Source: Trichosphaerium sp. ATCC 40318 (taxonomy: Eukaryota > Protista > Tubulinea). Taken from it: DNA of 64,000 nt. Both the position numbers and the translations under genes were made by a program. Positions 21,201 to 44,675 of this stretch are shown piece by piece. Position 1 is the stretch's first letter; each line of letters opens with the position of its first letter. The notes below the pieces were generated by a model. The model saw only the letters and a list, made by a program, of their open reading frames with translations, ran no database searches and was not told the origin of the DNA. The stretch is taken from contig JALMLS010000279.1 in NCBI GenBank assembly GCA_038496445.1, positions 1 to 64,000 on the forward strand, in the 5' to 3' direction.

Positions 21201-23363
21201 ACAATCAGTTGGCAACTGTGTACAAAGATAAATTTCAAGATATGGCACGGCAACACAGAGTGTGGCAAGAGTCTATTAATGAGGCCAAACGTAAGTCCTA
21301 ATTATTATTACCAGTATTGCAACGACTAACTAGTTTTGTCTAGGTAAAGGGCACAAGCGCTCAAAATCTAGGCGAGGCCTTAAGGAACCAAAGAGTCCAA
21401 GAATGGTACCTACACAACAGAACGCGAGTGTATATGAGTTTATTTGGAAATTGATTTTGACGCTCACTACCGACCCATACCCTGAGGTACGATAGACATA
21501 GTTCGCACTCTTATAAAGGTGGGTGTCGTAGGTTGCACAAATGGCGAATGCATTGGTAGTACAGCTTGCTGGACCACCAACCGATTTGGATCAGTCAGAT
21601 AGCGAGGAATCTTCTTCAAGTGCGTAAATACTTTACTACTGTATTTGCGCACGGTACTAACAACTACCAGCACGCACGCCTAGAAAGACACCGCGATCAT
21701 TGCGTAAATCTAAAAGAGTAGATAAGGGTAGTGCATCTGAGGTGTCACTTCGTTCAACCTTCTACGAGTGGAGCTGCCAATACTTTTCAACAGTGAGTCT
21801 TTTTGTTTTTTCATCAATCTACCATCCAGCCAGCAACTGACACTGATTTAAAGCCTCTTCTTGTTCCACAAGGTGAAGACGAAACATCCCCAGAGTACGC
21901 CGAAAGGATTAGGCGACAGAAGCGATATAAGAGAGTTGTTAAAGCAAGTGCTGCATTGCGTCAAACATCAAATACAGGTATGTGATTTAGTTACATACTT
22001 TATAATTAATTGTTTGTTTTCCCACAGCTAAGAAAGGCCCAAGAAAGTTGGAGAATGAGATTGCTCGATTAGAAAAGCATGAAGGTGATATGGTATCATT
22101 TATGGTGTTCCATCCATTTGAAGATATCATCACAGTAGCCAATGAACCTAATACAATCAGGTACAGCATACCGTTATTTTATACTCTAGTTACTGCTTTT
22201 TTTTTTTTGTAAATTGTACCTAAGTCCCTTGTAGCGTGTGGAATTGGCGTGATGGTGCCAAAAAGAACCAATTCTCTAACTTGAATCCTGCCAATACACG
22301 TATAACATCGATGGATTTACTTAACGATCACGATGTTCCGCTACTGTCAATCGCATCTGATGATGGTGTTGTGCGGATATGGAAGAACATTGATGGTAAA
22401 GAAGAAACGCAGTTGGTGACTGCGTGGAAAGTACTTAGTGACTTGACACCTGTGTCTACGACTGGAAGTGCTGGATTGATCACTGATTGGCAGCAGAAGA
22501 GAGGCTTGTTGGTACGCTCATATATTTTTTGCATTGTTACACCGTGTGAGAATAATTCTGGATGTTGTGTTAATATAACTCATAGTTTGCATCCGGTAAT
22601 GCTAATTGTATTCGCATTTGGGATTTGGAGCGTGAGTTGGCAATTCAAGATATCTCCACTGGTTGTGATACTTTTATGACATGCATGAACTCGGACAAAG
22701 TGCGTGACTCCAACCTCATTGTTGCTGGCTTTTTTGATGGCACTTTGCGGTTATTTGACAGGCGTGTTGGTGCTAAGTACGGGCCAATCGCCACCTTTAC
22801 AGAACATAAAGATTGGATTGTACAAGTATGTGTTTTAATTTGTTTTGTATACATAGATAGTTGTTACTATAATTTGAAATTAAGTGCTTGGTCTGGTTGT
22901 TTTAACCGTTTCTACAGGTGTTCATAAGTGGTGCTACAGGCGATATAATGTCTGGTTCTACTTCAGGTGTTGTCAAATTTTGGCATGAGGGTTCTTCAAA
23001 ATCATACAATGAGATAACAAAAGCAGCCTCTAATTCAGCACTAATGACAGCATTTGCTGTTCACCGACATGCCCCACTATTAGCAACGTATGTAAATATT
23101 TTTGCAGTCTGTTGTCTAACAAATTAATTAGTGGCTCACAAGATCAACGCATTAAAGTAATGAACTTTGAAGGAAAGGAACTCAGCTTGATTCGTTATCA
23201 TGATGGCTGGCTAGGACAAAGGATAGGGCCTGTTTCATCGCTTGCATTTCACCCGTACGGTAGTTGTTGTAGGTAACAAATATTTATTTTTGCTAGGCAT
23301 CGTGTGTTGCTTGCTGCTGGAACTACTGACTCAACAGTATCCATTTATGAAGGAGAAGTGTAA
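18230..23363 (+). CDS. RPTOR: Raptor / KOG1, regulatory-associated protein of TOR (many exons)
   Basis: [107 protein letters not shown] and WD40 regions, ending [21 protein letters not shown]. Confidence 0.97.
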
Positions 23364-26300
23364 TGTTAAATACATGTACTTAATAAAAATATGTCACATA
23401 ACAAAAGTGAGTTATAGTGTAGGTATCTGTGCTCAAGTCAAAACCAATTACAAATGCATTATTAACTAATATGAAGATGACCAAGTGTTTTGCAGCATAA
23501 CTGATAACTTTGTTTTGTATAAAATGGCTTGTTGGTAAATATAAAGCAATTAAACAAAATTAAAAAAAAATTTAACAAAGAATAAATGGCTTAGATAATA
23601 CTTAAGCCTTAACAAAGCTTTATACAACTTTTTAAAAGCATAAACAGTAAAGTGAAAGTACTGAGGGGTTGTTAAAATCTAAGCACAAACTTTAATATAT
23701 TAACTCAACCATAATTCTAGTTAGGGTTGAGAACTTAACCCTAGTCCTAATCAGTGACTGACTTTGAATAACCATTAGGGTTGCAAACCTAACCCTAGCC
23801 TAATCTGCAACTGATGTTTCATAATCATTAGGGTTGTAACCCTAACCCTAGCCCTAAATCAAATTTGCAATTACCAGCCATAACCCTAGCCCTAATAGAC
23901 TAAAATAACGATTAGGGTTATACCCTAGAAGCCAATTAGGGTTTAGGGTTAGGGTTTAGGGTTTAGGAGTATGTACCAACCGTATTTTTTTGTACACTAC
24001 TCTACCCTGTTGTAAAATTTTTTCGATTTTTTTGGCTTTTTTTTATGTTTTTTGCACATACAATCTCCCTGTAGGGTTACAGCAAGATAGGGTTTTTTAC
24101 AAACCCAGGACCTCATCAACAATCTTGCAAACTGTCAAATTCTCATTTTTTTCTTACTTTTTTTAAACAGGCGAAATTTCCGATTCACATTTCGAAACAC
24201 GAAATATTCCTGTCTATTTCTCAACACGATTATTGGGGGAAAAAAAGCCTCATTTTACTTTTTTGACTTTTCATAAATCAAGGATGAGCTCAGATGAAGA
24301 CCTCTCTCTCATAAACATTGAGTTTTCTGATGAGGATGAGCCCTCCAAAGAAGCTGATGGTAAGCCCAGGCTCAGGAGGAAGAGAGTACTAGGTACTAAC
24401 CTCTTTTTTACTCTTTGTTTTTTTTAAAACCCCTTTATTAGTCTTATTTTAATTTTTAAAGACTAATAAAGGGGGTTTTTTTGCTTTTAAATGGTTTTTT
24501 CAAAACCCCTAATTTTTCAAATAAATTTCGAAAAAAAATGATGGTTTTTGTACACGGTTTTCATGTGTCCGATTTTTTCGTTACCATGCGGTTTTTTTGC
24601 ATGGTAGAACCAAACCCAAACGAGGGTTTCGTAACACGCAGAACGCGTGTGTGTTGTTTTTCATTTGGTTTTGGTTCACACTGTTTTATTTTGCTTTAAT
24701 TTTCAACAGCGAGCTCGCCGCGGCATTAGAACACGTATATCGCGTGTTAGAAAGTCGCGCTAGTTGGCGGTTGGTTTTGGTACACAATTAAATTGTGTAC
24801 TTTTTTTTAATTTTTTTTGTTGTTTTGCTTTTTTTACAGACCGCGAGCTCGCTGTACGATTTTAAACACGCTTTTAACGTGTTCGTACATGACCGCGAGC
24901 TCGCGGTCGGTTTTCGTACACATAAAAAGTGTGTACTATTTTAAAAACCGTTTTTTTTTTTAAAAGTCTTGCTTTATAACTGATTGCTTGCTCGGTATAT
25001 GGTATACAACACTTATTTATTGTGTTCGTACCTGACCTTGAGCTCGCGGTCGGTTTTTGTACACATAAAAAGTGTGTACTTTTTAAAAAACCGTTTTTTT
25101 TTTAAAGTCTCTTTATAACTGACTGCAAGCATGCTGTTTTGAACGTAACACGTATTTAATGTGTTCGTTTCCGACCGCGAGCTCGCGGTCATATTTTCAA
25201 CACGAAAAACCGTGTTTGTATTTTCGTTAGTTGGAATTATTTGATGTGCCACTTCTAATACTCTTTTTAGCTCCAACAAGTCCTGGTTGGATGATTGTGA
25301 GTACCCATGGAAACCACAACACTGAAACAAAAATTGTGGGTACTCTAATTGGAGAACACAGAGATGTTATCTTTGGTTTTGAGTAAGTTGGTTGTTTTTT
25401 TTTTTTTTTGTTTTGTTCATTTTTTTTTTTTTTTTACCCATTTAATTTCACGTTCGACGCAACACGCATGTTCGTAAACGTAGCTGCCATTTATTTTTAT
25501 TTATTTTTTGTTTTTTTTTTTTTTACTGCCAATTCATTTCAATTAATTTATCTATGTAGAGGTGTTATCATAGCCAACCAGTTGGTTTATGCTAAAACCA
25601 TGCCCATCAAGAGGATGAAGAGATGTCTAAATGGGTTTTTTGTTGCCAGCTTTGACAATGTGCTGGAGTCCCAAATAACTCCTAACAACAAGCTGAAGGC
25701 AGCATTCAAGGTACGTTTTCTGATACATACACGCGCGGGCCGTGTTCGTTTTATTTCGTTTTTTTTTTTTTTTTTTTTTTTTTTTTTCTGATTTTTTGTG
25801 TTTTTTTCAATTATTTTTTTCCTCTTTTTTCCCTCAAGTATTCATAACACAGTTTTCATGTGTCGAAACCGCGACCGCGAGCTCGAGGTCGTGTGTGAAC
25901 ACTTAAATATACTGTTGTAAAATCGTCGCCTTTTGGTGTTTTTTTTTTTTTTTTTTTTTTCAATTATTTTTTTTAATTAATTTGTTGCTGTAGGAGAGAT
26001 TTCCATTTGTTGAAGGAGTAGACCAACTGCAGAAGTTTATCAAAGACGTCAGAAAAATCTACTCCTCGGACGAAGAAAAGTGGTGGAAGCCGATGCACTT
26101 CGAAGGCAACTACACCAGAGATTACAAGGAGCACGAACCCATGCCGAGAGAACACGGAGATGAGGAATCGGAGGTAGAGGAGAAGGAGAGGAATGGATGG
26201 ATTATAAGCTGCAAGTGGAGACAGTTGTATTGGCAGGTGCTACTCTGGACTGGCATATTCTACACAGCCATGGGACTTCATGTCACAGATTCTTGGTACT

Positions 26301-27376
26301 ACATTGCCCTTCTTTTGGTCCATTTTAGAGATTCCTTGAGCTTTGGCAATGATTCAGATTTCCATCTCTTTGTGGAGTAAGTAACAATTTTCGCGATATT
26401 TTTTTAACACGCGTTCAACGTGTTCGAAAACGAACGACGTTCATTTTTTGTTTTTTTTTTTTTGTTTTTTTTTTTTTTATTTTTAACTTTTATGTAGCTA
26501 CATGAAGACAGGCACCAATAAATTGAATGGCTGCATCATAAAGCCATCAATACAAAAGGGCCTGCTAAGAGGGATTGCTGCCAACTCTATCAACAAGAAG
26601 TATCTGAGAGTGAAGAAGCCCTCATTTTACAAAGGCCCCTTGGACATGTCACACATAGCTTGTTTTTTGAATGTCAGAGGAGTCAACCCCAGGAACATTA
26701 TACAGAAGATGCCTATTTATGAAACCTTCACCAAAAGGTTTGTGCTTTGCCCTATGCCTATTGTTTGGTGTGATGAATACAATACAGACCCTATTGTTGG
26801 CTTTGGAGTTGGAGATGGAGCACACTGTCTTTTGACAGAGTTGGCGTACGTTCGCGAATATTTTCGAACACGTATTTTACGTGTCGGTCGACCGACCGCG
26901 AGCTCGCGGTCGCGTTCGAACACTAGATTTTCCTGTCGTAAAAAAACCTCGAACGACGAACCTTTTTTTTGTTTTTCTGGTTTTTTACTTTTCCTTACCT
27001 TATTGTTCAATTGTTTCTTACTTGTTTGCCTTAGACAAAATGCAGCTAAACCTGCAAATTTGCAATCAAAAATGTGGAGTGGATAAATCCTTTCGCCAAG
27101 ATGCAAGCGATAGCGATCTACTGCACCAAGATCAACTTTCTGCAAAGTCTGACCACTCCAGACTCCAAGGTGGATCGCTACCGCCACCTGTTCAAGATGT
27201 GGTGCGACGACGCGGGCCAGGTCTTCGATTACCAAGCGGAGGCGGGAGATATAGGTAAGGTGAATTTTGCCATATGGGGAGCCAGCAGAGTCAAACCTCA
27301 GCTCAGTCCTGCTCAATGGAAAGAGGTGAGGGTTGTTTTTTTTTTTATTTTGATCTTTTTTTTTTTTTTTTTTTCC
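23127..27376 (+). repeat. Left arm of a ~4.25 kb inverted repeat (pairs with 33600-37842)
   Basis: Near base-for-base reverse complement. Identical ORFs appear on opposite strands, e.g. 26093-26380(+) = 34594-34881(-) and 24233-24427(+) = 36548-36742(-). Confidence 0.97.
23721..23967. repeat. Telomere-repeat-derived array: ~53 bp units TTAGGGTT..AACCCTAG, then a (T)TTAGGG run
   Basis: Units start at 23721, 23775 and 23828, with partial units at 23881 and 23912. Run ttagggtttagggttagggtttagggtttagg at 23936-23967. Confidence 0.85.
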
Positions 27377-29687
27377 GCAAGTATTTTTAAACAGAGGTTT
27401 CGCGTGTCGTAGATCGTACCGCGAGCTCGCGGTCGCGTACGAACACTAAAATACTCTGTTGTAAAACCAACGATTTTTAGTTTGTATTTTTTTTTTATTT
27501 GTATGTTATAACTGATTGTTTTGTTTAGTTTTTGGTTAAGATGAATCTATACTTTCCATATGTGACCAACTGGAAAGAAAGCAAGCAGTTTGTTAAGGCT
27601 GGCATGTTTTTTGAGCCATTGGACAGTGCTCTGATAGCAGAATTGGTTGCATCTGCTGAAAATGTGGTACGTAGGCTTTCGTCTTTATTCTAACACGCAT
27701 TTCGCGTGTCGAAGTACAGACCGCGAGCTCGTGGTCGGTTTCGAACACGCATTTTGTGTGTTGTATAAAGTTTCGGTCGTTCACTCACACTCTCATCATA
27801 GCACACCAAACATCCAGTGGGCTACAGGACTAGAATATTGGCTCATGCTGCATGGGCAGAGTTACCTCTCCATGCCAGAATAGCAGTAAGTCAAGTACCT
27901 TTTATATTTTTTTTTTGAAAAAAGGGTTTGTGCCTAACTTGTACATTTAGTTTGTCAAAGCACTGACCTGCAGGGTGTATCATGAGACCAATCAATCTTA
28001 TTATTTGCAGAGGTACAAGAACTGCAGCCAATATATCACACAGGTACAAAAAAAAAAAAAAACCAATCGGTCAGTTTTTTTTTGTTGTTTTTTTTTTGTT
28101 GTTTTTTTTTTTTTTCTTCTCCCTCCACCCTCATCTAACTTTAACTCGAGGCCTTGAGACAGCTGAACGAGCTCGGTTGGTACGAGCTCTCGTGGGACAC
28201 GAGCACCGAGGAGGAGCACGTGAATTTCGCGAACAGCCTGCGTCTGTGTATATTTCGCCAGCTTTTGATGTACGACCTGCACTTGCTTTGGACCGGCACC
28301 ACAGAAGATGGCCAAAAATTGCCCAAGATGGTTATAGAAGAGATGAAGTACAAGCAAGCAGCAACGGTGCTCTCCTTCTCTCACACTGCCTTGTTGTCTA
28401 TGCAGTGCTTGGATTTGCCTGAGGTGGAGGAAGCAAGTAAGTGTCATTTTTTTTTTTTTTACACTACACATCCAATGTCGCGCTCGGCGCTACACGCGAA
28501 TCGCCTGTTCGTCGAACGTGGCGGTCGTACCTCTTTTCTTTTCTTTTTTTTTTTTTTTTTTTCTCTCCCTAGTTTACTTTTAAACTAATGTCCTTTGTAG
28601 CTCCTCAGTTAGAAGCCATGTTGGAGAATGCCTACTTACCTTTTAGAGATACAAGGGCCAAAAACACTGCCAATGCAAGGGCAAGTGAAGGCAGTGCCAT
28701 AAACAGGCATAAAAAAAAAGGTAAAGGCAAAGGCAAGAAAAAGAAGCCTATGGTTAAAACAACTCCTCCTACATCAGATGAAGAAGAAGATTTTGAAGAA
28801 AAAGAAGATGAGAATGAGGATGAGGTTGAGGATGAGGTTGAGGATGAGGTTTCAGAAGAAATCCAGCTGCAAAAAAGACCAAGAAGAAGCAGCAGAGCAC
28901 ATGGGTTGTTCAAAAAATCAAGTGAGCCTTGGTTTGAAAGTGTAGTAACTCACAGACCGATCGTACTCGGTACGAACACGATCGCGATGTGTTGGTTTTT
29001 TTTTTTTTTTCCTTTCTCTTTTTTTTTTTTTTTTTTTCATAAACCAATGTACCAGTTGATGTTATTTAGATTCTGATAAACCACAGCCTTCTACATCAAA
29101 ACGTCATGTAAATAAAAGGTCAGGACCAACAAAGATGACCACAAGAAGCAGTCAGAGACTAAAACGAGGTACGTTAAATGTGAACACACATTCTCTGTGT
29201 TCAAATTCGACCGCGAGCTCGCGGCGGGTCGCCGACACCTACTTTACCTGTTGAAAAATAGCATTTTTTATGCGAACTTCACATGACTTACTTGGAGTTT
29301 TTTTTTGTAGCTGGTAAAATAGATTTGACCCAGTTGAGTGAAGATGATGAAGAGAGCAAAGAAGAGGAGGAAGAAGATAATAAGAAAGGTAAAGAAGAAG
29401 AAAGTGATGATGATGAAGAAGAAGAAGAAGGAGAAGAAGAAATCATAACTGAACAACTGGTAGAGAGAGCTGATTTGCCACCAAGGAAACAAAGAAGAGG
29501 CAGAAGAGTGTTGAAAACTCCAGGTAAAATACCAACTAGATCTTCTGGTGCAAAAAAAAGAAAGAGAAACAGCATTGGCAAAGCAGGAAGGGCCAACAAG
29601 AAAAACAAGACAGGTAAAAAGCCTGTTGAAAACGAAGACGAGGATGGTGAAGGAGAAGAACAACTCAGTGAAGAAATCTTTGAGTAA
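24284..29687 (+). CDS. Gene X: ~950 aa orphan protein, 13 exons, weak ParB/Srx-like motif, acidic/basic low-complexity C-terminus; one 1-nt frameshift near 27048
   Basis: Phase-consistent exons: 24284-24385, 25231-25382, 25560-25710, 25994-26376, 26498-26845, 27035-27325, 27529-27666, 27802-27885, 27951-28043, 28151-28436, 28601-28939, 29070-29168, 29311-29687. The missing A near 27048 is present in the inverted copy. Motif PIVW..FGVGDGAHCL. Confidence 0.8.
24707..29226. repeat. Dispersed intronic 18-bp palindrome GACCGCGAGCTCGCGGTC within a longer GTGTTCG..CG(A/T)ACAC hairpin unit
   Basis: Perfect copies at 24891, 25173 and 26894. Near-perfect copies at 24839, 25034, 25873, 27418, 27719 and 29209. 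Degenerate copies near 24707 and 28956. Confidence 0.92.
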
Positions 29688-30164
29688 AACACATTGTGTA
29701 ACTTTACCTTAATAAATATAGTTTTAATGTAGTTTAATTTTTTAATGTAGTTTAAAACGTGATAGTAACTTTGTCAACTTTTTTTGTCAATATTTACGAT
29801 GTTGTCAACTTTGTTACAAAATGCTGAAAATTATTTTCAGCACGCACAGCCAGAAACAACGTATTTGAGTTGAAAATACAAAGTGATGCCCGATTTAGAA
29901 AAAACACGTTTGGGTTTTTTTTTTGCTTTAAATGTACATGTGGTTTTACAGTATCTCACATGGTATGTACTACTACACCTTAAACAGTACATAGTGATGC
30001 ATTTTGCAAATTTTTAACCCGTTTAAGGTTTTTATTTCACAACAGCAGCATATTGTACTGTAAGAGAGTTTTTGCGCGTAGAAAAGCATAGTGTAGGTAC
30101 TTGCGAGATGGTTTACTTTATTATCTTTTGATTTTGCCCCATACTTTTTTACAATTGGTGAAAT

Positions 30165-32330
30165 ATGTCTACAGTGCTTCTAACATACCATGAGATATCA
30201 ATAGTTACTTTTTTGTAACATGGGAGGTAAGTATAACAAAAATCTGTAACAACTTCAAGAAGTGTATACACAGCCTTGAACATTGTGTTATGAGCGTTTG
30301 AAAGATCCTACATCACTTAACAAGCCATACTTACTATTTGTGTTTGATGTTGGACGCTAATGAGCACCATTACGGCCAGCAATACCATCAATAGGTAATG
30401 TCAAGCTGCTGGCATGGAACCAAGGAAACAACCCTGTTTTTTATTGTTCAAAAGAGAAAAAGTGGGCTCGACAATATAGTCACATACGCCATGCAAACAC
30501 ACACAAAGGGATTACATGGTATTACCGTTGCAAAAGACGCGGGATTTGTACAGCTAAGTTACAGATTGTCTCAAGAGCTGGTAAAGACGCTGAACATGCT
30601 CAAGTGTTGGATATCAGACAAACAGAAGGTACTATAAACAACAACAGTTTAATTGAAGTTTAAAATAACCAAAATTGTTAGGGCATTCTCTACAGTGCCT
30701 CCCTATTCCCGTTCATAAATTAAAACTTGGAACTGGCGCAAAAACTAGCATTAAAAAAGATCTGGCACGCAAAATACAAAACGAAGTGTGGTACGAAAAA
30801 TGACATCAGCATCTATCACTAATTGTTTTTATGTACTAGTATAAAGCTTTTTTACAAGATGAATCTAAAGATCCTCTTAATGGCTATGAGGTACTAACGC
30901 TAATAACATGACATACCTGGCGCGTAGAGTGCACCACGAAAGGATATGCACCATGAGGTATTGGTTTTTTATTATGCTTGGATTAACATGCCCACAGGTT
31001 TACTCAAACATTCGGATGATGTACCCCGAATCATCTAGAATTGTTCAAGCCACAAATGATGTAATATCATTTGTCGAGCCAGATTGTGACAAAAAAATAC
31101 ACAACCTTGATACCAGTGTCCTCTTTGTTGATGGCACCTTTGGCATTGCGGATATTAACGCTCAAGTACGTGTAGTAAAAGTAAACAAGATTTTTTAGCT
31201 CATATATTTTACTTTAGGTTTTGTTTTTTTGGGTAAAGGCTGTTGGTGACACTACACCAAGGAACTTGTATTAGCTTTGCCATTATGAAGAATAAAACAC
31301 TGGCAGAGTATGAATACGCGTTTATGCACCTAAAGAGTGTATGTGGTGCTCCTTTTGAGCGTTTGATGACTGACGGAGAGACAAACATGAAAAGAGGTAC
31401 TTTTTTTGCCAACATTTGTTTTACAACTAGTAATATTTGTTTAGCCGCTACAAATGTACTGAGACCCTTAAAAATAGCCCAGTGTATTTACCATATAGCA
31501 GAAGCTCATAGACGAAGGCGAGCAAGGCTAGGATTGAAAAAAGAAGGCGTGAAGAAGAGAATAGATGGTGTAAGCTTGTTTCTTCTGAGCTGATATACGA
31601 AAAAATGAAAAAGCATTCTATCGTAAATGGCACGCCTTTAAAAAAGAAGTGATTGAGAAGAGCGATGACTGCAAACAATTTATTAAATACTTAGCTAATA
31701 CTTACATTGAGGTTGCAAACGAAATAACCGAGTACACTACATAATTCATACCACAACCTTTTTCTTATTTTTTCCTTACTTTTCGTTTTAAACTTTTTTT
31801 TTTACTAGCTCTCCTCCATCTACTGGGCTCTTTGGACTGTTAAGAATACGCCTTGGGAGCACTGTCGAACGAATAATATCAGTGAGGGCAACAACTGCGA
31901 TGTCAAGAATGTGTTAACATTTGAGGTACTACTAAGCGAGCTTGTGATGTTGTGTTTTCTTCTCTGGCAAACTATGCAAAGTGCAGCTTAAAGGATGGCA
32001 TGCGTACAGTAGAAGGAATACCTGTTGGCACTCCAAAGCTGTACAGAGAAGAGACGCAAAGAGCAAGCTGAGAAAATCAGAAAGCGGTGCATGTGCTAAT
32101 GCTACATTAATTTTTGCTTGTAATGTTGTTTAGTGAAACGGCTTAATACTCCGCTGCTAAAATTAAAAGCACAACAAAAAGCTGCGAGAGAAGCTAAAGA
32201 AGCTAAAAGAATCCAAAAAGAAAAAAACAACGCCTTCAACATAACCAACACCTTACAGTGCCATTAAAGGTTAGAATCTTGGGTAAATTTAAGCTATTAA
32301 CTTTGCTCATAGCTTCGAAAGAATTAAACA
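30165..32330 (+). mobile_element. Mutator/MULE DDE transposase gene with introns, probably partly decayed (ends approximate)
   Basis: FLYWCH/WRKY-like finger TWYYRCKRRG..GHSLQC. Catalytic VLFVDGTF, RLMTDGE, CIYH (CxxH) and RTNNISEGNN. Confidence 0.88.
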
Positions 32331-33599
32331 ATCATAATCAAAAAAAAATCAATGAAAAAATACCTTGCTACAAACTTTAATAAACTTCATTTCCTCCTCT
32401 ATTGTGGCGTTTACTTGTAGCTGATGAGACGCCTGTAGTATTAATAAACGTGAAGTTCTTGGTTTGTTTTTAAATAGCTTAGTTGTGGTTCAGGGCTTAT
32501 TTCTACCAACTACTTATGATTTTTTGGTCAACTTTCTGTCAACTTTTTGTGTCAGCAATTATTACTGTAGGTATTTCATGAACGTAATATAAAGGTCTTT
32601 CAACCTAAACAATATATATGCGCTTCACAGGCTATGCTTTGTTAATAATAAAAAAACAGCTGAGAGGTTGAGAACAGGTTCACAGAAAGTTGACAAAAAA
32701 AAATTGACAGAAGTTGATATTACCTGTCACCGTTTAATAAAAAACAACTTGTAGGTTTTTTTTTTCTTTTTTTCAGAGCCAAAGTTTTTTTGAATATTAA
32801 GACAATTGTACATGTGTTTTTAAATTGAAAAAAAAAAAAAAAAAAAAGAGAGCTATTATTCAGCTTCTTTGTACAATAAAAAAAGACTTGTTGTTTGGTG
32901 TGTATTATTTATATTATTTATTTATTTATTTTATGTGTGGTTATAGTTTATATAAAATTTCAAGTGCAAATATAATGAGATTTTTAGGGTAAAGGTTGGT
33001 GTAGTTTGGAAGGTAAGGTTTGGAAGGTGGGGGGGGGGGGGGGTTAAGTGCAAGGTTGGGTGTAAGTTAATGTAGTTTAATCTTCCTCTAATCCTGGTTT
33101 TTGGCTTTTTTTAGCTTGCTTTGACAAGCTCATAGTTGTATCTCTCTCTTGAAGCTTTTCAACATGGTTGTTGCAAATCAGCCATGTTTGTGTTTGGCCA
33201 CCTTTTCAAAAAGGCCAAACAGTAATGGATTTGTCTGCTAACTGTACCTTGATGTCAATTTCCTTGTGTATTTTTAAAGACAGCCATTATTTTGGATAAA
33301 CTTATGTGCATTACAAAAAAAAAAAAAAACTCAGTAAAAATTAAAAAGCAATCTATCTATTGTATCAATAGTGGTAAAAGTAAGTACTTTGGTGGTAAGC
33401 ACAGTTTTGGCCCCTTCAGGTTCATAAAAGAGACATCTTTTTCAGACACAGCATTTCGTAGGTTGGATTACTCGAACAGGCTGGAAGTGTGTCTCTCACT
33501 ATGGCTGGAGTTTGGTTTTGTCAATGAGCTCTTCCAAGTGTTCAGGATCGCTATGACATCAGCAATAGGTCCAAAGCTCTTTATGATCATTGTTAATGT

Positions 33600-36500
33600 G
33601 GAAAAAAAAAAAAAAAAAAAGATCAAAATAAAAAAAAAAACAACCCTCACCTCTTTCCATTGAGCAGGACTGAGCTGAGGTTTGACTCTGCTGGCTCCCC
33701 ATATCGCAAAATTCACCTTACCTATATCTCCCGCCTCCGCTTGGTAATCGAAGACCTGGCCCGCGTCGTCGCACCACATCTTGAACAGGTGGCGGTAGCG
33801 ATCCACCTTGGAGTCTGGAGTGGTCAGACTTTGCAGAAAAGTTGATCTTGGTGCAGTAGATCGCTATCGCTTGCATCTTGGCGAAAGGATTTATCCACTC
33901 CACATTTTTGATTGCAAATTTGCAGGTTTTAGCTGCATTTTGTCTAAGGCAAACAAGTAAGAAACAATTGAACAATAAGGTAAGGAAAAGTAAAAAACCA
34001 GAAAAACAAAAAAAAGGTTCGTCGTTCGAGTTTTTTTACGACAGGAAAATCTAGTGTTCGAACGCGACCGCGAGCTCGCGGTCGGTCGACCGACACGTAA
34101 AATACGTGTTCGAAAATATTCGCGAACGTACGCCAACTCTGTCAAAAGACAGTGTGCTCCATCTCCAACTCCAAAGCCAACAATAGGGTCTGTATTGTAT
34201 TCATCACACCAAACAATAGGCATAGGGCAAAGCACAAACCTTTTGGTGAAGGTTTCATAAATAGGCATCTTCTGTATAATGTTCCTGGGGTTGACTCCTC
34301 TGACATTCAAAAAACAAGCTATGTGTGACATGTCCAAGGGGCCTTTGTAAAATGAGGGCTTCTTCACTCTCAGATACTTCTTGTTGATAGAGTTGGCAGC
34401 AATCCCTCTTAGCAGGCCTTTTGTATTGATGGCTTTATGATGCAGCCATTCAATTTATTGGTGCCTGTCTTCATGTAGCTACATAAAAGTTAAAAATAAA
34501 AAAAAAAAACAAAAAAAAAAAAACAAAAAATGAACGTCGTTCGTTTTCGAACACGTTGAACGCGTGTTAAAAAAATATCGCGAAAATTGTTACTTACTCC
34601 ACAAAGAGATGGAAATCTGAATCATTGCCAAAGCTCAAGGAATCTCTAAAATGGACCAAAAGAAGGGCAATGTAGTACCAAGAATCTGTGACATGAAGTC
34701 CCATGGCTGTGTAGAATATGCCAGTCCAGAGTAGCACCTGCCAATACAACTGTCTCCACTTGCAGCTTATAATCCATCCATTCCTCTCCTTCTCCTCTAC
34801 CTCCGATTCCTCATCTCCGTGTTCTCTCGGCATGGGTTCGTGCTCCTTGTAATCTCTGGTGTAGTTGCCTTCGAAGTGCATCGGCTTCCACCACTTTTCT
34901 TCGTCCGAGGAGTAGATTTTTCTGACGTCTTTGATAAACTTCTGCAGTTGGTCTACTCCTTCAACAAATGGAAATCTCTCCTACAGCAACAAATTAATTA
35001 AAAAAAATAATTGAAAAAAAAAAAAAAAAAAAAAAACACCAAAAGGCGACGATTTTACAACAGGATATTTAAGTGTTCGTACACGACCTCGAGCTCGCGG
35101 TCGCGGTTTCGACACATGAAAACTGTGTTATGAATACTTTAGGGAAAAAAGAGGAAAAAAATAATTGAAAAAAAACACAAAAAATCAGAAAAAAAAAAAA
35201 AAAAAAAAAAAAAACGAAATAAAACGAACACGGCCCGCGCGTGTATGTATCGGAAAACGTACCTTGAATGCTGCCTTCAGCTTGTTGTTAGGAGTTATTT
35301 GGGACTCAACACATTGTCAAAGCTGGCAACAAAAAACCCATTTAGACATCTCTTCATCCTCTTGATGGGCATGGTTTTAGCATAAACCAACTGGTTGGCT
35401 ATGATAACACCTCTACATAGATAAATTAATTGAAATGAATTGGCAGTAAAAAAAAAAAAACAAAAAATAAAAAAAAAATAAATGGCAGCTACGTTTACGA
35501 ACATGCGTGTTGCGTCGAACGTGAAATTAAATGGGTAAAAAAAAAAAAAAATGAACAAAAAAAAAAAAAAAAAAACAACCAACTTACTCAAAACCAAAGA
35601 TAACATCTCTGTGTTCTCCAATTAGAGTACCCACAATTTTTGTTTCAGTGTTGTGGTTTCCATGGGTACTCACAATCATCCAACCAGGACTTGTTGGAGC
35701 TAAAAAGAGTATTAGAAGTGGCACATCAAATAATTCCAACTAACGAAAATACAAACACGGGTTTTTCGTGTTGAAAATATGACCGCGAGCTCGCGGTCGG
35801 AAACGAACACATTAAATACGTGTTACGTTCAAAACAGCATGCTTGCAGTCAGTTATAAAGAGACTTTAAAAAAAAAACGGTTTTTTAAAAAAGTACACAC
35901 TTTTTATGTGTACAAAAACCGACCGCGAGCTCGAGGTCAGGTACGAACACAATAAATAAGTGTTGTATACCATATACCGAGCAAGCAATCAGTTATAAAG
36001 CAAGACTTTTAAAAAAAAAACGGTTTTTAAAATAGTACACACTTTTTATGTGTACGAAAACCGACCGCGAGCTCGCGGTCATGTACGAACACGTTAAAAG
36101 CGTGTGTTTAAAATCGTACAGCGAGCTCGCGGTCTGTAAAAAAAGCAAAACAACAAAAAAAAATTAAAAAAAAAGTACACAATTTAATTGTGTACCAAAA
36201 CCAACCGCCAACTAGCGCGACTTTCTAACACGCGATATACGTGTTCTAATGCCGCGGCGAGCTCGCTGTTGAAAATTAAAGCAAAATAAAACAGTGTGAA
36301 CCAAAACCAAATGAAAAACAACGCACACGCGTTCTGCGTGTTACGAAACCCTCGTTTGGGTTTGGTTCTACCATGCAAAAAAACGCATGGTAACGAAAAA
36401 ATCGGACACATGAAAACCGTGTACAAAAACCGTCATTTTTTTTCGAAATTTATTTGAAAAATTAGGGGTTTTGAAAAAACCATTTAAAAGCAAAAAAACC

Positions 36501-36691
36501 CCCTTTATTAGTCTTTAAAAATTAAAATAAGACTAATAAAGGGGGGTTTAAAAAAAACAAAGAGTAAAAAAGAGGTTAGTACCTAGTACTCTCTTCCTCC
36601 TGAGCCTGGGCTTACCATCAGCTTCTTTGGAGGGCTCATCCTCATCAGAAAACTCAATGTTTATGAGAGAGAGGTCTTCATCTGAGCTCAT
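33600..36691 (-). pseudogene. 3'-truncated inverted copy of gene X (exons 1-6), with frameshifting indels
   Basis: Homology stops in the poly-T tract of intron 6 at 33600. One-base indels near 35306, 34417 and 33838. Confidence 0.85.
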
Positions 36692-37007
36692 CCTTGATTT
36701 ATGAAAAGTCAAAAAAGTAAAATGAGGCTTTTTTTCCCCCAATAATCGTGTTGAGAAATAGACAGGAATATTTCGTGTTTCGAAATGTGAATCGGAAATT
36801 TCGCCTGTTTAAAAAAAGTAAGAAAAAAATGAGAATTTGACAGTTTGCAAGATTGTTGATGAGGTCCTGGGTTTGTAAAAAACCCTATCTTGCTGTAACC
36901 CTACAGGGAGATTGTATGTGCAAAAAACATAAAAAAAAGCCAAAAAAATCGAAAAAATTTTACAACAGGGTAGAGTAGTGTACAAAAAAATACGGTTGGT
37001 ACATACT

Positions 37008-37254
37008 CCTAAACCCTAAACCCTAACCCTAAACCCTAATTGGCTTCTAGGGTATAACCCTAATCGTTATTTTAGTCTATTAGGGCTAGGGTTATGGCTG
37101 GTATTGCAAATTTGATTTAGGGCTAGGGTTAGGGTTACAACCCTAATGATTATGAAACATCAGTTGCAGATTAGGCTAGGGTTAGGTTTGCAACCCTAAT
37201 GGTTATTCAAAGTCAGTCACTGATTAGGACTAGGGTTAAGTTCTCAACCCTAAC
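37008..37254. repeat. Inverted copy of the telomere-repeat-derived array
   Basis: cctaaaccctaaaccctaaccctaaaccctaa at 37008-37039, followed by the hairpin units. Confidence 0.85.
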
Positions 37255-37609
37255 TAGAATTATGGTTGAGTTAATATATTAAAGTTTGTGCTTAGATTTT
37301 AACAACCCCTCAGTACTTTCACTTTACTGTTTATGCTTTTAAAAAGTTGTATAAAGCTTTGTTAAGGCTTAAGTATTATCTAAGCCATTTTATTCTTTGT
37401 TAAATTTTTTTTAATTTTGTTTAATTGCTTTATATTTACCAACAAGCCATTTTATACAAAACAAAGTTATCAGTTATGCTGCAAAACACTTGGTCATCTT
37501 CATATTAGTTAATAATGCATTTGTAATTGGTTTTGACTTGAGCACAGATACCTACACTATAACTCACTTTTGTTATGTGACATATTTTTATTAAGTACAT
37601 GTATTTAAC

Positions 37610-37842
37610 ATTACACTTCTCCTTCATAAATGGATACTGTTGAGTCAGTAGTTCCAGCAGCAAGCAACACACGATGCCTAGCAAAATAAATATTTGTTAC
37701 CTACAACAACTACCGTAGGTGAAATGCAAGCGATGAAACAGGCCTATCCTTTGTCCTAGCCTGCCATCATGATAACGAATCAAGCTGAGTTCCTTTCCTT
37801 CAAAGTTCATTACTTTATGCGTTGATCTTGTGAGCCACTAAT
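37610..37842 (-). pseudogene. Duplicated last two exons of Raptor (fragment)
   Basis: Reverse complement of 23127-23363 with several small deletions. Confidence 0.9.
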
Positions 37843-38310
37843 AGCGCTTCGCTTCAAAATGCATTCCACTTTGAGGTTTATGCATGTACCGCTTCGCTAA
37901 ATAATGCATTTCACTTTAGGTATCATATTGTTGTTTCACTACAATATCTTGGATTTCTTCATTTTTTTCGCATGAAGTGCTTCGCTTCAGAATGCATTCC
38001 ACTTTAGGCACCGCATATGTGCCGCTTCGCTGAATAATGCATTAGGTGTCACATGCGCACCGCTTCGCTACAGTATCTTAGATTCTTTTAATTTTTTTTT
38101 CGCATTAGATTTTGTAATGGGCTTCGCTTCAGAATGCATTCCACCATAATCTCTGCATGCCTACCGCTTCGCTACATAATGCATTCCACTTTAGGTCCCG
38201 CATGCGTGCCGCTTCGCTACAAATTGTTGGATTCTATGAGTTTTTCGCTTTTTTGCCGCTTCGCTACAGAATGTTGTCGTTGTGACCCTATAATATATCG
38301 CTTCGCGATA
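37843..38310. repeat. Minisatellite: ~42 bp monomers with core (C)GCTTCGCT..AATGCATTCCACTTTAGG, grouped into ~135-145 bp trimers
   Basis: GCTTCGCT near 37846, 37891, 37979, 38024, 38062, 38121, 38166, 38211 and 38257. Confidence 0.85.
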
Positions 38311-39849
38311 TATTTCTACACAGTGCTTTGCACTGTTACATAGTACTATATGTATAATATCGGCAACATACGTTGCCTACATGCTGTTTAGCAACAGCAT
38401 AGATCCCTAACCCTAACCCCCCCTATTAAAACTTATTATTTATTAATCTCTTTTACAGCCAAGTATGACTTGATCGATATGTATGTGTCCAAGGAAAATG
38501 AAATTATTTGTGTTGTGCAAATGGATGATGATCATGATGAAGAAAAGTGGACTTTACAACAAGCTTTAAAAAGAAATGTTGTGGTAGATAGTTTCTTAAA
38601 AACTATTTTACCAAAAAAATAAAAAATTATCTTAGTTACCAATAAAAGATTATCTTATATCTCATAGTCATGAATAGATATGAAAATAAATAATATCTCA
38701 TTATGTTGCCATGTATGTATAGATATAAATTTAAATTACAATTTAGCTACACATGATATACTAAAAACTTTGTGTATATGAGAAATGTGCATACATATTT
38801 TTTACCAAAAAAAAAAACCAATTACAAGCTCAAAATCGCTTACATCTATATAACTCATCACTATGGATACCTACAAATCAATTATTGCTTGTACCATGTT
38901 TATATGGCCTAATAACATATATGTACATACATAAAGTAATTAAAAATACATTTGTAAATGCAGCCTCCAAACACAACTGCATGGTAAAAATATTTCAAAA
39001 TTTACAAAAAAAAAAAGTTCACGTGTCGCTCACGGGCCATGTAATGCACGAATATCATTTTCGATGCTGCACACCATAATAATATATGCCTGTGCCTAGC
39101 GGCACAGCCATGAAAGTAGCAAAATCTAATAAAATCAAAAAAGTAGAGGTTTAGGTAACCTTAACCCTAACCCCTAACCCAGTCTCCACCACACCAACAC
39201 TTCCTAAACATTTTTTTTCCATTTACTACTGACGTTTTATATAGACTAGTCACCACACACTTAGTATTTTATGAATTCTAACGAAACTACTGCCATTCGA
39301 ACCGCAGCACCCAAATGCACCTACAACAGGAGTACAGGTACTTTAAACCATTTTTCCAGTCTGTGAAAATATACCAATAATTTGTTAAATTTTTTTTCTA
39401 GCTAAAGGGTTTTTTCCATATGAAGAACATTGAAGTTTTTTGTGTTTTGTGTACTGTACTTTAATAAATGAATCACTATTGTATGCTTATATAAAGTCTT
39501 GTTTTATGAGTATATGGTGTCTGAGTTATGCCCAAAAATTGAGGGCAAAAATGCCTTATTGTTGCACTAAAAATGAGGCATTATTGGACCAACAATGCAG
39601 GCTATTTTAAGGCTAATAAGTGAACCAGTTGCTTGCTATTTGGCCCAAATATGAGGCTTCAAAGCCCAAAATTACAAGGCAATGCCTCATATTTGCTCAT
39701 TTTTTTTGGCAAAAACAAGGCAATTTGATGAAAAATAAGGTTGTATTTGGTGGCAAAAAAAAGGCTTTTACAAAAAAAGCCTTATTTAGTTTCAACCCTG
39801 TTACAATTGTTTATCATGTGATTTCATAGGTCTATTGGCATGTATTTAG

Positions 39850-41185
39850 CCAATATAAAGCTGGTAAAAAAATAAATCCATTTAAATGATCCACATGGAC
39901 ATTTAAAATCACAGGTTTCATTACAATAGTGGCTCAAACCATGATTCCAACAGTACAAAAATTCTTTTTGCATCAAATTTATGACATCTGGATATTTATT
40001 TTCTACCTTTTTGATACATCTATTTTAATGGTTCTATTATAGCTGTTGTTAATGCAATTAAATAACATACTTTATAAACCATGTAAACATTCTAGGTGCA
40101 AGTCTTTGAAGTATTTTCATGTTCCAAATATATTTTCAAGCTCTTTTTTTAAAACTTTTTTGTAATGTCCCAAATCACATAATATAAACACATTTTCTCC
40201 ATTTCATATAAAATTTGATGATGAATCTCCATTTAAAACCATTGCATTGATGGGTTGTAAAAACTTTTTGTTTTAAACTGTGATAGAATTTTTTGTTTGA
40301 CTTCTTTCATATCTTTTGATGTGCCAGGATGATTACTTAGATATTCAAATGTATGTAATTTAAAATCAACTTTGTTAGCTTTACTAAGTACACTACAATA
40401 AACAATCTTTTTATTCTTAGTTGCAAATGCTAATTTATTTAAAAAAGATAGATTATTGATAAAACTTACCAAATGTTACTCCATGTGGTGCTTTGTTGTA
40501 GGCTTGTTGGACCAGCTTGTATCTATTGCCAATGAGATTTGGGGGTTTTTTCCAATTATTTTGGTTTGTTTTTTCTGTAACTGTTCTTCACAAGCTTTTG
40601 ACACAGTTGGTCACACAAAATTTGATATTTTCATGGCTTCAATTATGATTACACATAGCAAGTTCATTGTTTTGAGTGTATTCTCAAATTTGTTTACACT
40701 AACCATAGAAAATAAAGCTGTTGTTGTTGTCTTTACATTAACTGTATAAAACTGTTCATCTGATGAAACTGTGTATTTATCCATTGAATGAGTAACATGA
40801 GTTTGTTCTATGTTACAAAAGGTGCATTTGAGACAAAACTCACTCACTATTCCTTTTTTTTTTTCAGTGATAATTTTGAATTTTCAGCTGTCACACAATT
40901 CACATGAGATTTTTTATATTACATCCAAAAATATATCTGTTACCACAATAATCTGTTTTGTTTTTTGATTTTGTGTTTTTATGGATATTTGTGGTTTTTC
41001 TTGATTGATTTTTCTATGAAGAAATAGTTTTAAAAAGCAGCTGTTATAGTTAAAAGTCCCATCATAAAACAGAGTTTGCCTTGGTAATAAAGGTTTGATG
41101 TGACTTTTAGAAAAAACAAACTGCTTACAATTTGCACACACAGTATGATTTTTGTGTGTTGTGGACCATGCTTTACTTGTCATAT
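39850..41185 (-). pseudogene. Decayed DDE transposase of the Mutator-like (PF20700-type)/Kolobok-like group
   Basis: Ordered motifs despite stops and frameshifts: CANC..CTFC zinc ribbon, AIDTSWSNK, NHPGTSKDM, NGDSSS, CDLGHYKK. Compare the family pattern DGTW..NH.GSS..ME..DGDSS..C..H..K. Confidence 0.6.
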
Positions 41186-41811
41186 GGTAACAAATTTGTA
41201 ATATTGCAAAAATAACAACATTTAACAAAATTTATTGATAAAGTTTACAAGTGTTTTTACACTCTTGTTTTTGCATTGTTTGCTTGTTTTGCACCACTAA
41301 ATTTCTGTTTAGAATACTATTGCAATTTTAGAATGGCGTTTAAGCTTTTTTTTTTGTAAAAGTTGGACAATATCCCACAAATGCATTCTTTACACACATG
41401 TGGTACTGTTACAGGCAGTTTAAAGCACTGGCATGCCTTTTAAGGAAAGTAGTGACTTAGTATTGCACTTTTAAGAGATATGATAAAGTATGTAGTAATG
41501 TATGGTTCAAATTAAATCCTTAAACCTAGCAAATGATCATGCCAATTAGGGTTAGGGTTAGGTTTACAACCCTATGTTGCATTGCAACCTAGCTAGGGCT
41601 AGGGTTAGGGCTTGTCTTTTTTTATGCACTGCTACTCTCGATAGGTTACTGTATAGGATAAGGCTAGAGATAAGGTTGGCTTTTATTCTGAGAGGCCCTT
41701 GTATTTGCTTTGGTATTTGTTGGAGTTTAATATAATTCTACTTTTTATATTGTGTGTTGTTTAATATTCATTTACTTTAATTTATTTTTTTGTGTATGTT
41801 GGTTTTCATTA

Positions 41812-42871
41812 CAGGTCTAAAAATTAAAGTGGTATATACCAGTTTTTTTATGGTATATACCACTTTTTTCAACAAAATGGTATATGGACTGGTATATACC
41901 ATTTTGAAATACCACTTTTTTTAGAAATTAAGTGAATAACAAAGTGGTATATGGAAGTGGTATATACCACTTTTCATTCACATAATGAGACCTTCTAAAA
42001 ATGGTATATAAAGTGGTATATACCACTTTTTTATGGTATGTGGTATATACCACCTTTTTATTGGTATATACCACTTTTATGGTATGCTTCAAGAAGGTCA
42101 TTAAGGAGCTTTTTGGTAATGGGTTTTCTTGTTGAACGATCACAGACGTCATATATTGAACGGTGCGTAGGGACCTTAGTATATCATAGAATCTAACCAA
42201 ACCAGGCTCATTCGAACCGCAGGACCTGATTCCAGTACCAGCATTAAGAAAACTATATTGCAGGTATTATACAGACGTTCGTGGGTACCAGACAAAGTTT
42301 TATTTTATTTTCGTTTGATATACATTAACCGACCTCCGTAGGCCTTAGTAATTGATGGATTCAGGTGGGATCACTTTCATTAGGTGCGCAGCATGTTTTT
42401 ACAGTAGGTACAGCAAGCTCATGAAGATGGACGAATTTTTCAGACGCCCATAGTAATGTAACTGTAGTGGACATTGTCCAAAACTTGTAACTCACAAACT
42501 GTGTATTAAATAAAGTGTATTTTCTGGAATTGCAGGTGTACCATAAGTAGGCATAAAGTGGTATATAAAAGTGGTATATACCATGAAAAACTGGTATAAA
42601 AAAGTGGTATATAACTGGTATATACCTAAAAAAAGTGGTATAAAAAAGTGGTATATTTTTTTTTTTCTGGTGAAAAAAAGTGGTATATTTTCTGTTTTTA
42701 TACCTGTTTTTTTTGGTATATTGTTGGTATATTTGGTCAATATACCACTTTTTTTGGTATATTTCAGTCAAAATATACCACTTTTTTTGGTATATACCAT
42801 AAAAAACTGGTATAAAAAAGTGGTATAAAAGTGGTATATACCAAAAAAACTGGTATATTTTTTTAGACCTG
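41812..42871. mobile_element. Non-autonomous TIR element (MITE/foldback-like) with TTA target-site duplication, PIF/Harbinger-like
   Basis: TTA|CAGGTCTAAAAA at 41809-41823 and TTTTTAGACCTG|TTA at 42860-42874. Subterminal AAGTGGTATATACC arrays at 41827-42080 and 42555-42857. Confidence 0.8.
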
Positions 42872-43079
42872 TTACAAAATGACTTTACAACAAAATATAC
42901 CACTACTTGCATGGCATGAATAACTATCAAAACTTATACTTTATATTAATTTTATGCACATTTAACCATATCATTCACAGGCTTGCATCCACAAAGACAA
43001 TAGCATAAAACCAATTACAACAGAAAAATTTTAATACATTTATGAGGTTTCTGTGACTTTACAGTTTTCTTGTATTGAA

Positions 43080-44488
43080 TTAGTTGGCCGTGTCCATATC
43101 GTCACCAGCAGCGAGGTCATCCTCATCAGGTACAAGATTTGAAATAAGCTGTTCAAGTCGCTCAGTAGAGTACATGCGGAATTTACCGTCTTCTCGTGAG
43201 ATGACACCAACTTCAACATTCTTTGCTTCAAGTTTTTCTTCCATAACCTGCTTCAATACGCTCAATGCCAAATTTTCTGCTTGCTCAATGGTCATGTCAT
43301 TGTATTTTTTGTACTCCTCCTCAAGTTGGGCTTGGGCACCTTCAGAACCAGATCCTAATGTAACATTAACAACTGCGCTTGATAAAAAAAAAAATAAAAA
43401 ACAATTTCGTGGATTGCAAACGCTATGTACAAACACAATGGCAGTTGTCAATACACCGTTGAGTTAATTCTTTTTCAAACACAAAATACAAATGACAAGA
43501 ACAAATTGCAAAAAAGAGCGCTGAAGCGTACCAATGGCTTTTGCTTTATAACGATACATTGTGCCAGAAGGATCAGCGTGGAAGAGACATGGACCAGTTT
43601 CATCTATACCGCCCAAAAGCAAAGCAACACCAAATGGCCTGCTCATCGCATCCTTCTCCTCTCTGTCTTCACCAAACCGCAAGGCAAGGTCGCAAATGGC
43701 TTGTGTGATGGATTCTAGTTTGATAGGCTCATCGTATGTAAAACGGTAGTTTTGTGCCTCTACACGAGCGTGTTCAACCAAAGTACGCGCATCAGCAATA
43801 AGCCCGCTCATGGCACAGCTAAAAAGCATGCACGTTAGTAAAGGTCGAAATGAGACTTTTGGTACGGCAAACACCAAATGATTACTTGTTAAAATACGAG
43901 CGTAAAACGCGATGACGGTTTTAACAAAAAAAGAAAAAAACAACAAAAAATTACTGACAATCAAAGTTTTTGGGTTTGCTGAACGCTGAAGTACCGCAAC
44001 TGTTAAATAGAACGTACCCAATATGTGTATCTATCTCTGTAATCTTTTCAATTGAAGAAGGGACGATCAAAGGCGAAGTGATACGTTTTTCAACCGCCAA
44101 TAAAACGCCTTCAGCTGCTTCGATTCCAAGAGCTGTTGTACCGAGCTAGTGCGAGTTAACGTCAAGGAATCTAGTGTCACAAACAACAGAAAGGCAAAAA
44201 CAAAAAAAAGCAACAAAGCAAGCTACAAAGTGTTTGAATTTAACCACAGTACGCGACGGTGTTTAAACGCACCTGGATTGCTTTTAGAGCGTATTCAACT
44301 TGAAATAAGCGACCCTCAGGAGAGAACGTATTAACACCACGATCATATTCGTTTCTAACACGATAAAATAAATGAGTACGCGACCAATAAATATTTATCA
44401 TCGACGAAGGCGTTGTTTGCCACCAAAACAACGCGAGAACGGTGGCGTCAAAGCGTTTAAATATTGCGACGTACCTTGCTAAAAACAT
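43080..44488 (-). CDS. PSMA5: 20S proteasome subunit alpha type-5
   Basis: MFLAR|[22 protein letters not shown]; [23 protein letters not shown]; [19 protein letters not shown]; GSGSEGAQ; LKQVMEEKL. Confidence 0.97.
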
Positions 44489-44675
44489 TGTGTATCGTTC
44501 AAAATTATACCGACTCTCGAGTTGTTACTATTGTTTGATGCGAGGTGGCTAAGACTAAATGCTAACCAAAAATTTGTATGGTATTCAGCCGGCTAAGGTT
44601 TTTTACCAGCAAAAACTTAACCCAAGTAAAAACTTAATCTGTATCGTAAATTTTCTCAATTTTTTATCTAGCAAC
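44489..44675. promoter_or_regulatory. Putative bidirectional promoter between PSMA5 and RPS23
   Basis: Only 187 bp separates the two divergent start codons. Confidence 0.6.

Follow-up and report, generated by a model that had tools for sequence, protein, structure and literature searches.

Here we describe a locus within a 64,000-nt stretch of the Trichosphaerium sp. ATCC 40318 genome (contig JALMLS010000279.1, positions 1 to 64,000; hereafter called the window), in which the introns of one lineage-specific gene harbour multiple copies of an 18-bp palindrome, GACCGCGAGCTCGCGGTC. A sequence-only reading of the window had proposed that this gene codes for a ParB-like protein and that the palindromes are its binding sites, with a repeat of the miniature inverted-repeat transposable element (MITE) or introner type as an alternative. 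The presence of the palindromes in the introns of the gene is a confirmed observation. The gene and its partial duplicate have the following organisation:

24284-29687, + strand: lineage-specific gene of 13 exons, whose open segments, distributed over three frames, are connected through 12 phase-consistent GT-AG introns
24284-24359, 25271-25382, 25560-25710, 25994-26376 and 26498-26845, + strand: exons 1-5
27035-27325, 27529-27666, 27802-27885 and 28011-28043, + strand: exons 6-9
28151-28436, 28601-28921, 29070-29168 and 29311-29687, + strand: exons 10-13
27045-27050, + strand: frame break in exon 6, where the A-run at 27048-27050 lacks one base relative to the inverted copy and the flanking frames are offset by one
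33597-37838, - strand: truncated inverted gene copy, which carries exons 1-6 and their introns as far as the poly-T of intron 6, in addition to telomere-like repeats and the 3' end of the upstream WD40 gene

The spliced coding sequence is 2699 nt long, one base short of an open frame, and corresponds to a product of approximately 899 residues (with an X at the frame break), not to the ~950 residues estimated initially. It consists of ~650 soluble, non-repetitive N-terminal residues followed by a tail of ~250 residues rich in Lys and Glu and harbouring basic clusters. We found no hydrophobic segment of membrane-span grade in the product and no internal protein repeats, and growth of the gene by duplication of exon-plus-intron units was therefore rejected. 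The rebuilt introns range from 107 to 283 nt, with the exception of intron 1 (910 nt), which replaces the range of 65-845 nt given before. Family and sequence searches returned no relatives of the gene, in line with its description as an orphan; however, a pentatricopeptide repeat (PPR) open reading frame (ORF) of the window used as a control likewise lacks a close database relative, and hence 'orphan' and 'no transcript found' are weak arguments here. As this control shows, the lineage is poorly sampled.

Scanning the window for GACCGCGAGCTCGCGGTC with up to two mismatches yielded 15 matches, compared with 0.00 expected from shuffled sequences. Nine of them lie within the gene (at 24839, 24891, 25034, 25173, 25873, 26894, 27417, 27719 and 29209, the last one ending at ~29226) and six within the inverted copy, spanning 34066-36134. 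Intron 1 harbours four palindromes and one more degenerate, and introns 3, 5, 6, 7 and 12 one each, which reproduces the earlier tally of five in intron 1 and single sites in the other five introns. Including relics in introns 2, 4, 10 and 11, 10 of the 12 introns carry a copy or a relic of the element described below. The shorter cores CGAGCTCG, GCGAGCTCGC and CGCGAGCTCGCG are similarly confined to the gene and its inverted copy. A literature search for the 18-mer gave no match, and CGCGAGCTCGCG appeared in six unrelated papers only. Matches of the 18-mer to metagenome and viral contigs were discarded as chance occurrences, as they are single sites without flanking arms, on probably prokaryotic contigs with GC contents of at least 51%.

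Alignment of the copies showed that the 18-mer is the core of a quasi-palindromic unit of ~90 nt, eight full copies of which share a three-hairpin consensus. The unit is laid out as AACAC-N9-GTGT(TCG), spacer, 18-mer, spacer, (CG)AACAC-N12-TGTTG, and the GTGTTCG..CGAACAC arms that had been noticed around the palindrome are thus real. Its T-rich and A-rich ends are mutually complementary, such that it is quasi-palindromic from the TTTTA..AACAC end to the TGTTG..TAAAA end, with two possible folds, namely three hairpins or a single long one. We built a covariance model on eight element copies and scanned the whole window with the filters off. The model, which scores the element on both strands, recovered every full copy as well as the degenerate element of intron 1 and the intron 4 relic, and all its matches with E<0.01 lie inside the gene or its inverted copy. 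The mismatch scan, the core scan and the covariance model therefore agree with the claim that the palindrome is private to these two places, as far as the 64-kb window is concerned. Comparison of the window with itself using BLAST showed no other repeat connecting the gene locus with the remaining window. The copies, which grade from perfect to decayed, are as follows:

24724-25231, + strand: intron 1 array, a degenerate element followed by three 143-nt tandem units
24724-24818, + strand: degenerate element of intron 1 (covariance-model score, 36.8 bits)
24859-24954, + strand: element of intron 1 (85.9 bits)
25002-25097, + strand: element of intron 1 (74.3 bits)
25141-25231, + strand: element of intron 1 (66.5 bits)
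25840-25930, + strand: element of intron 3 (88.1 bits), with one core mismatch
26861-26951, + strand: element of intron 5 (90.2 bits), with a perfect core, beginning 15 nt past the donor site
27384-27474, + strand: element of intron 6 (77.4 bits)
27686-27776, + strand: element of intron 7 (82 bits), occupying 91 of the 135 nt of the intron
29177-29266, + strand: element of intron 12 (76.7 bits), occupying 90 of the 142 nt of the intron
26400-26466, + strand: relic in intron 4 (21.5 bits, E=0.016), in which the left hairpin and the CGAAC arm are left and the core palindrome is gone
25450-25484: relic in intron 2, identified by reading the sequence
28465-28530: relic in intron 10, identified by reading the sequence
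28955-28995: relic in intron 11, identified by reading the sequence, corresponding to the degenerate copy already reported for this intron
34026-34116, 35045-35135, 35742-35830, 35875-35970, 36017-36112 and 36157-36251: elements of the inverted copy

Tandem Repeats Finder describes the intron 1 array as a repeat with a period of 143, 2.3 copies and 81% matches, and introns 3 and 6 have a 166-nt segment in common, with 75% identity. Fold predictions gave -44.3 kcal/mol for intron 7 (z = -5.3 relative to shuffles) and a z score of -3.65 for an intron 1 unit.

Conservation is unevenly distributed along the element. Across six independent introns, the core 18-mer has a pairwise identity of 0.91 and the AACAC, GTGT, ACAC and TGT blocks are invariant, with values of 0.2-0.47, i.e., near random, for the spacers and loops. 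This pattern is unlike that of a young, neutrally decaying repeat. Mismatches inside the 18-mer are not accompanied by compensating changes, and compensatory double changes affect one base pair only, in the left hairpin, indicating that structure alone is not what is conserved. The invariant blocks next to near-random spacers rather indicate that specific bases are recognised by some factor, which could be the copying machinery of the element or a host protein, selection then acting on the element or on the locus, respectively. The covariance model also suggested a uniform sense orientation of the copies. This was not retained, as in a model-free pairwise test only those of introns 3, 5, 6 and 7 are clearly co-oriented, which is not significant.

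The reading that we favour, at roughly even confidence, is that the palindrome is the core of a ~90-nt, three-hairpin repeat, a small, non-autonomous element of foldback or MITE type that has multiplied locally in the introns of one lineage-specific gene, whose product would be a protein of nuclear type. Of the two proposals of the sequence-only reading, its MITE- or introner-type alternative thus comes nearer to the evidence than the ParB module, although the introner part does not hold by the published definition (see below). Local multiplication inside the gene would account for the tandem array of intron 1, the segment common to introns 3 and 6, the single units of introns 5, 7 and 12 and the relics elsewhere. 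Copies would persist in introns only, because splicing removes them there, and exonic copies would be lost. The strong hairpins may hold the effective intron length near the ~45-nt minimum of the neighbouring gene. Some sequence-specific protein presumably recognises the element, most simply its copying machinery.

With intronic MITEs and foldback elements the repeat shares its short, non-coding, near-wholly palindromic unit with inverted-repeat arms, the presence of several diverged copies and relics, the tandem arrays and a tolerance limited to places where it is spliced out. It differs from them in that all known copies are in one gene and that conservation peaks at the centre and at internal blocks, not at the termini. 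Several further points weigh against our favoured reading. Target-site duplications are not recognisable in the aligned flanks, the copies being diverged and their ends ill-defined. No autonomous partner was identified, the sole nearby transposase-like remnant having different terminal repeats (GTCAACTTT). The remaining ~49 kb of the window, which include intergenic DNA where a MITE would be harmless, are devoid of copies. Of the five segments folded, three do not significantly exceed shuffled sequences in stability (z -1.1 to -1.7). Finally, saturated spacers beside invariant blocks fit a function at the level of the host equally well.

The gene is part of an inverted segmental duplication of 4.2 kb, with arms at 23131-27380 and 33597-37838 that are 87-100% identical depending on the segment and are parted by 6.2 kb of unique sequence. 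Since it also takes in the final exons of the Raptor-like WD40 gene upstream, this is a duplication of host DNA rather than a transposon terminal repeat. In the exons, the arms differ by two substitutions and four single-base indels, mostly in homopolymers, and the truncated copy is further disrupted by these indels. The full-length copy has one frameshift (27048-27050) and the truncated one three (equivalents of 25663, 26558 and 27137). Homopolymer frameshifts in both gene copies could represent real decay or long-read assembly errors.

Other repeats were found in the surroundings. A degenerate series of transposase-like ORFs lies between the gene copies, at 29770-32720 (remnant proper, ~30400-32100), with a weak match to an RYYR-CCHC zinc finger (E=0.017) and, by eye, DGTF, TDGE and CxxH motifs of the type found in Mutator-like elements (MULEs); MULE identity was not confirmed by Pfam. 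This series is bracketed by GTCAACTTT repeats at 29773, 29804, 32527 and 32538 and, in inverted orientation, at 32686. Telomere-like TTAGGG/TTTAGGG motifs arranged as short palindromes (TTAGGGTT..AACCCTAA) form 53-nt tandem units at 23721-23960 and 37020-37253, i.e., 300-560 nt upstream of the start codon of the gene, and one more copy is present at 41546-41574. A satellite composed of 45- and 142-nt units (GCTTCGCT..AATGCATT) occupies positions 37843-38290, directly beyond the right arm of the duplication. A perfect 12-bp palindrome unrelated to the element, TGGTATATACCA, occurs ~11 times in 1 kb at 41830-42843 (0.1 occurrences expected in the whole window), in an AT-rich, CpG-free stretch just downstream of a proteasome gene. 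The TGGTATATACCA cluster and the telomere-like palindromes indicate that clustered palindromic repeats are a trait of this stretch of DNA, not only of the gene.

The exons and introns of the gene differ markedly in composition. The observed/expected (o/e) CpG ratio of the exons is 0.31, with 8 of the 13 devoid of any CpG, compared with 1.97 for the introns and 0.57-0.98 for the host ORFs of the window; the elements retain their CpGs inside a CpG-depleted region. Nearly all exonic CpGs are found in three patches rich in G and C at third codon positions (GC3):

26047-26169, + strand: CpG-bearing, GC3-rich exon patch
27094-27243, + strand: CpG-bearing, GC3-rich exon patch
28168-28294, + strand: CpG-bearing, GC3-rich exon patch

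These patches are 120-150 nt long each, with centres ~1060 nt apart, and their GC3 is 0.67-0.87 versus 0.23-0.6 elsewhere. They do not appear to derive from the element, as local alignments are no better than with shuffled sequences. CpG-free runs of 300-2033 nt are found only within 23.3-43.1 kb of the window, the longest one (2033 nt) at 39304-41336. In the exons, TpG and CpA are in excess and TpA is not, which fits methylation-driven decay and not repeat-induced point mutation. The gene is thus located in a CpG-depleted, repeat-rich island, and the compositional history of its introns differs from that of its exons.

As a yardstick for host introns we used the proteasome alpha-5 gene (43023-44611, - strand), for which the MMETSP collection has a transcript of 99.7-100% nucleotide identity; this match links the window to a marine microbial eukaryote covered by that project. 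The transcript verifies four introns of 118-195 nt, with GTACGT, GTACGC or GTGCGT donors, 35-45% T and a CpG o/e ratio of 1.79, showing that introns exceeding 100 nt that are rich in T and CpG and have GTACGT donors are ordinary for this organism. The statement that the introns of the gene are longer than those of the flanking genes is therefore valid relative to the neighbouring Raptor-like WD40 gene (41-92 nt, by reading) but not to the proteasome gene.

Among the rival explanations, the one that survives best, while still unlikely in our view, is that the elements constitute a functional array of sites for a dimeric, sequence-specific DNA-binding protein that regulates or protects the locus, as an intronic enhancer, an insulator or an anti-silencing device; in the version proposed initially, that protein is the product of the gene itself. 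An array of this type would explain why not only the pairing but also the sequence of the 18-mer and the four symmetric AACAC/GTGTT blocks is invariant, next to near-random spacers, why the elements are limited to a single gene within 64 kb and why they keep their CpGs in a CpG-depleted region. AACACG is also present twice, 60-90 nt upstream of the start codon of the gene, and the predicted Lys/Glu-rich tail with its basic clusters and the lack of a membrane segment would suit a nuclear protein. Conversely, the decayed copies of four introns show that the constraint is not general, the mismatches of the 18-mer are uncompensated, the CpG-rich proteasome introns make this property of the elements unremarkable in this host, and both gene copies are frameshifted. 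No protein search revealed a DNA-binding or ParB domain in the product. The conservation of the blocks is the single observation in favour of a sequence-specific binder, and it could equally well reflect a transposase or a host factor.

It is somewhat less probable still that the element is a true introner, i.e., that transposon insertions created introns in a gene that once had few or none. Gozashti et al. 2022 (PMC9860276) defined introners operationally as at least four introns of one genome that are mutually similar at BLAST E<=1e-5 in all-against-all comparisons, the similarity starting, at both splice sites, no further than ~10 bases inside the intron or 5 bases inside the exon. Introns 1, 3, 5, 6, 7 and 12 are indeed linked at E values of 4e-26 to 1e-5. 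However, all matches are interior and no pair reaches both ends, the best pair aligning positions 83-246 of the 283 nt of intron 3 with positions 11-175 of the 203 nt of intron 6, which places these introns outside the published definition. Creation of introns would agree with the presence of a copy or relic in 10 of 12 of them, with the fact that the element fills approximately two thirds of introns 7 and 12, starting 8-19 nt after the donor, and with the contrast in CpG o/e ratios between exons and introns, which fits younger or differently derived introns. Nevertheless, the host itself typically has GTACGT donors and introns rich in T and CpG, and a 90-nt insertion into a 45-nt host-type intron gives the same intron lengths. 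Insertion into short introns that were already present and the creation of new ones are equally compatible with the data. Introners as described in Micromonas, Aureococcus, dinoflagellates and others (PMC9860276) resemble our repeat in that several introns of an aquatic protist are similar at that E value and in their inverted-repeat architecture. They differ in that similarity extends to both intron ends and that many unrelated genes are affected; here, we found no copies in the introns of neighbouring or unrelated genes of the window, outside the gene and its duplicate, and no target-site duplications.

The specific module envisaged initially, in which the protein of the gene binds as a dimer to the 18-bp palindrome and the AACAC/GTGTT half-sites in its own introns and promoter, appears very doubtful. 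It would represent a self-contained eukaryotic device for autoregulation, anti-silencing or locus pairing, and the fold of the protein might be a very remote relative of ParB/Srx. The string PIVW..GVGDGAHCL that inspired it is present at the end of exon 5 and its P-I-V-W ... D-G-x-H pattern recalls the motif of the ParB/Srx N-domain, but in G-D-G-A-H-C a Cys residue takes the place of the key Arg of that family. All profile and sequence tests of kinship with ParB were negative. Searches of Pfam, NCBIfam and PHROGs with exons 4, 5, 6, 7 and 10 gave no match at a threshold as loose as E<=10, and exons 6, 7 and 10 did not match any helix-turn-helix family. Phmmer searches with the motif-containing exon 5 gave no match among 1.84 billion representative proteins, nor did a word-indexed search with exon 4, and there were none in the PDB. 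BLASTP comparison with ParB of phage P1 gave E=2.5, and the four matches obtained with tblastn among 72,556 plasmids are junk, none of them being on a ParB or partition gene. The putative domain would extend across the junction of exons 5 and 6 and across the frame break, and a single-sequence AlphaFold2 model of exon 5 is unusable (mean pLDDT 29.3, pTM 0.18). As in bacterial ParB-parS modules, palindromic sites are clustered in and around one gene; unlike in those modules, we identified no ParB domain by profile or sequence and no helix-turn-helix domain or ParA partner, and the sites are intronic, in a spliced nuclear gene of a eukaryote. These searches lend no support to the proposal of a ParB-like protein that would bind sites of its own.

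We consider it about equally doubtful that each element codes for a structured small RNA hosted by an intron, with the gene serving as a host gene in the manner of those of small nucleolar RNAs (snoRNAs). Introns 3, 5, 6, 7 and 12 do hold one element each, conserved blocks alternate with variable stretches and some copies form stable hairpins. This situation recalls the snoRNA host genes GAS5 and UHG, with about one conserved structured element per intron and unremarkable or decaying exons. Unlike in those genes, the exons form a long, frame-consistent ORF, the consensus lacks C/D or H/ACA boxes and the orientation of the copies is inconsistent, with only those of introns 3, 5, 6 and 7 clearly co-oriented. 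Furthermore, no Rfam family scored above noise in the 23-38 kb interval (E<=1; no match on an element), compensatory changes are limited to one base pair, and a tRNA-like cloverleaf in the element was rejected, as ARAGORN found nothing tRNA-like.

Least credible of all is an artefact of sequencing or assembly, be it adapter sequence, vector sequence or a fold-back chimera: the SacI site inside the palindrome core, the many homopolymer-length differences between the two gene copies, typical of long-read errors, and the inverted duplication would be compatible with it, but the element copies are mutually diverged and set in a coherent exon-intron structure, the arms differ by real substitutions and are separated by 6.2 kb of unique sequence, and the core has no relevant counterpart in the literature.

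At present, this amounts to a well-documented family of repeats, whereas a module of a protein and its binding sites is not demonstrated. Beyond the palindromes reported initially, this analysis adds the contrast in conservation between blocks and spacers, the near-CpG-free exons with CpG-rich introns and the homopolymer frameshifts in both gene copies. In the reading that we favour, a foldback or MITE-like repeat has colonised, and has possibly helped build, the introns of one lineage-specific gene. Should the element turn out to be restricted to this gene and to be conserved among sister strains, it would represent a rare intronic array of sequence-specific cis-elements in a single protist gene. 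If it is instead dispersed throughout the genome, the gene would record how a foldback repeat colonises introns or helps build them, and its CpG-free exons and CpG-rich introns would provide a built-in relative clock for intron gain.

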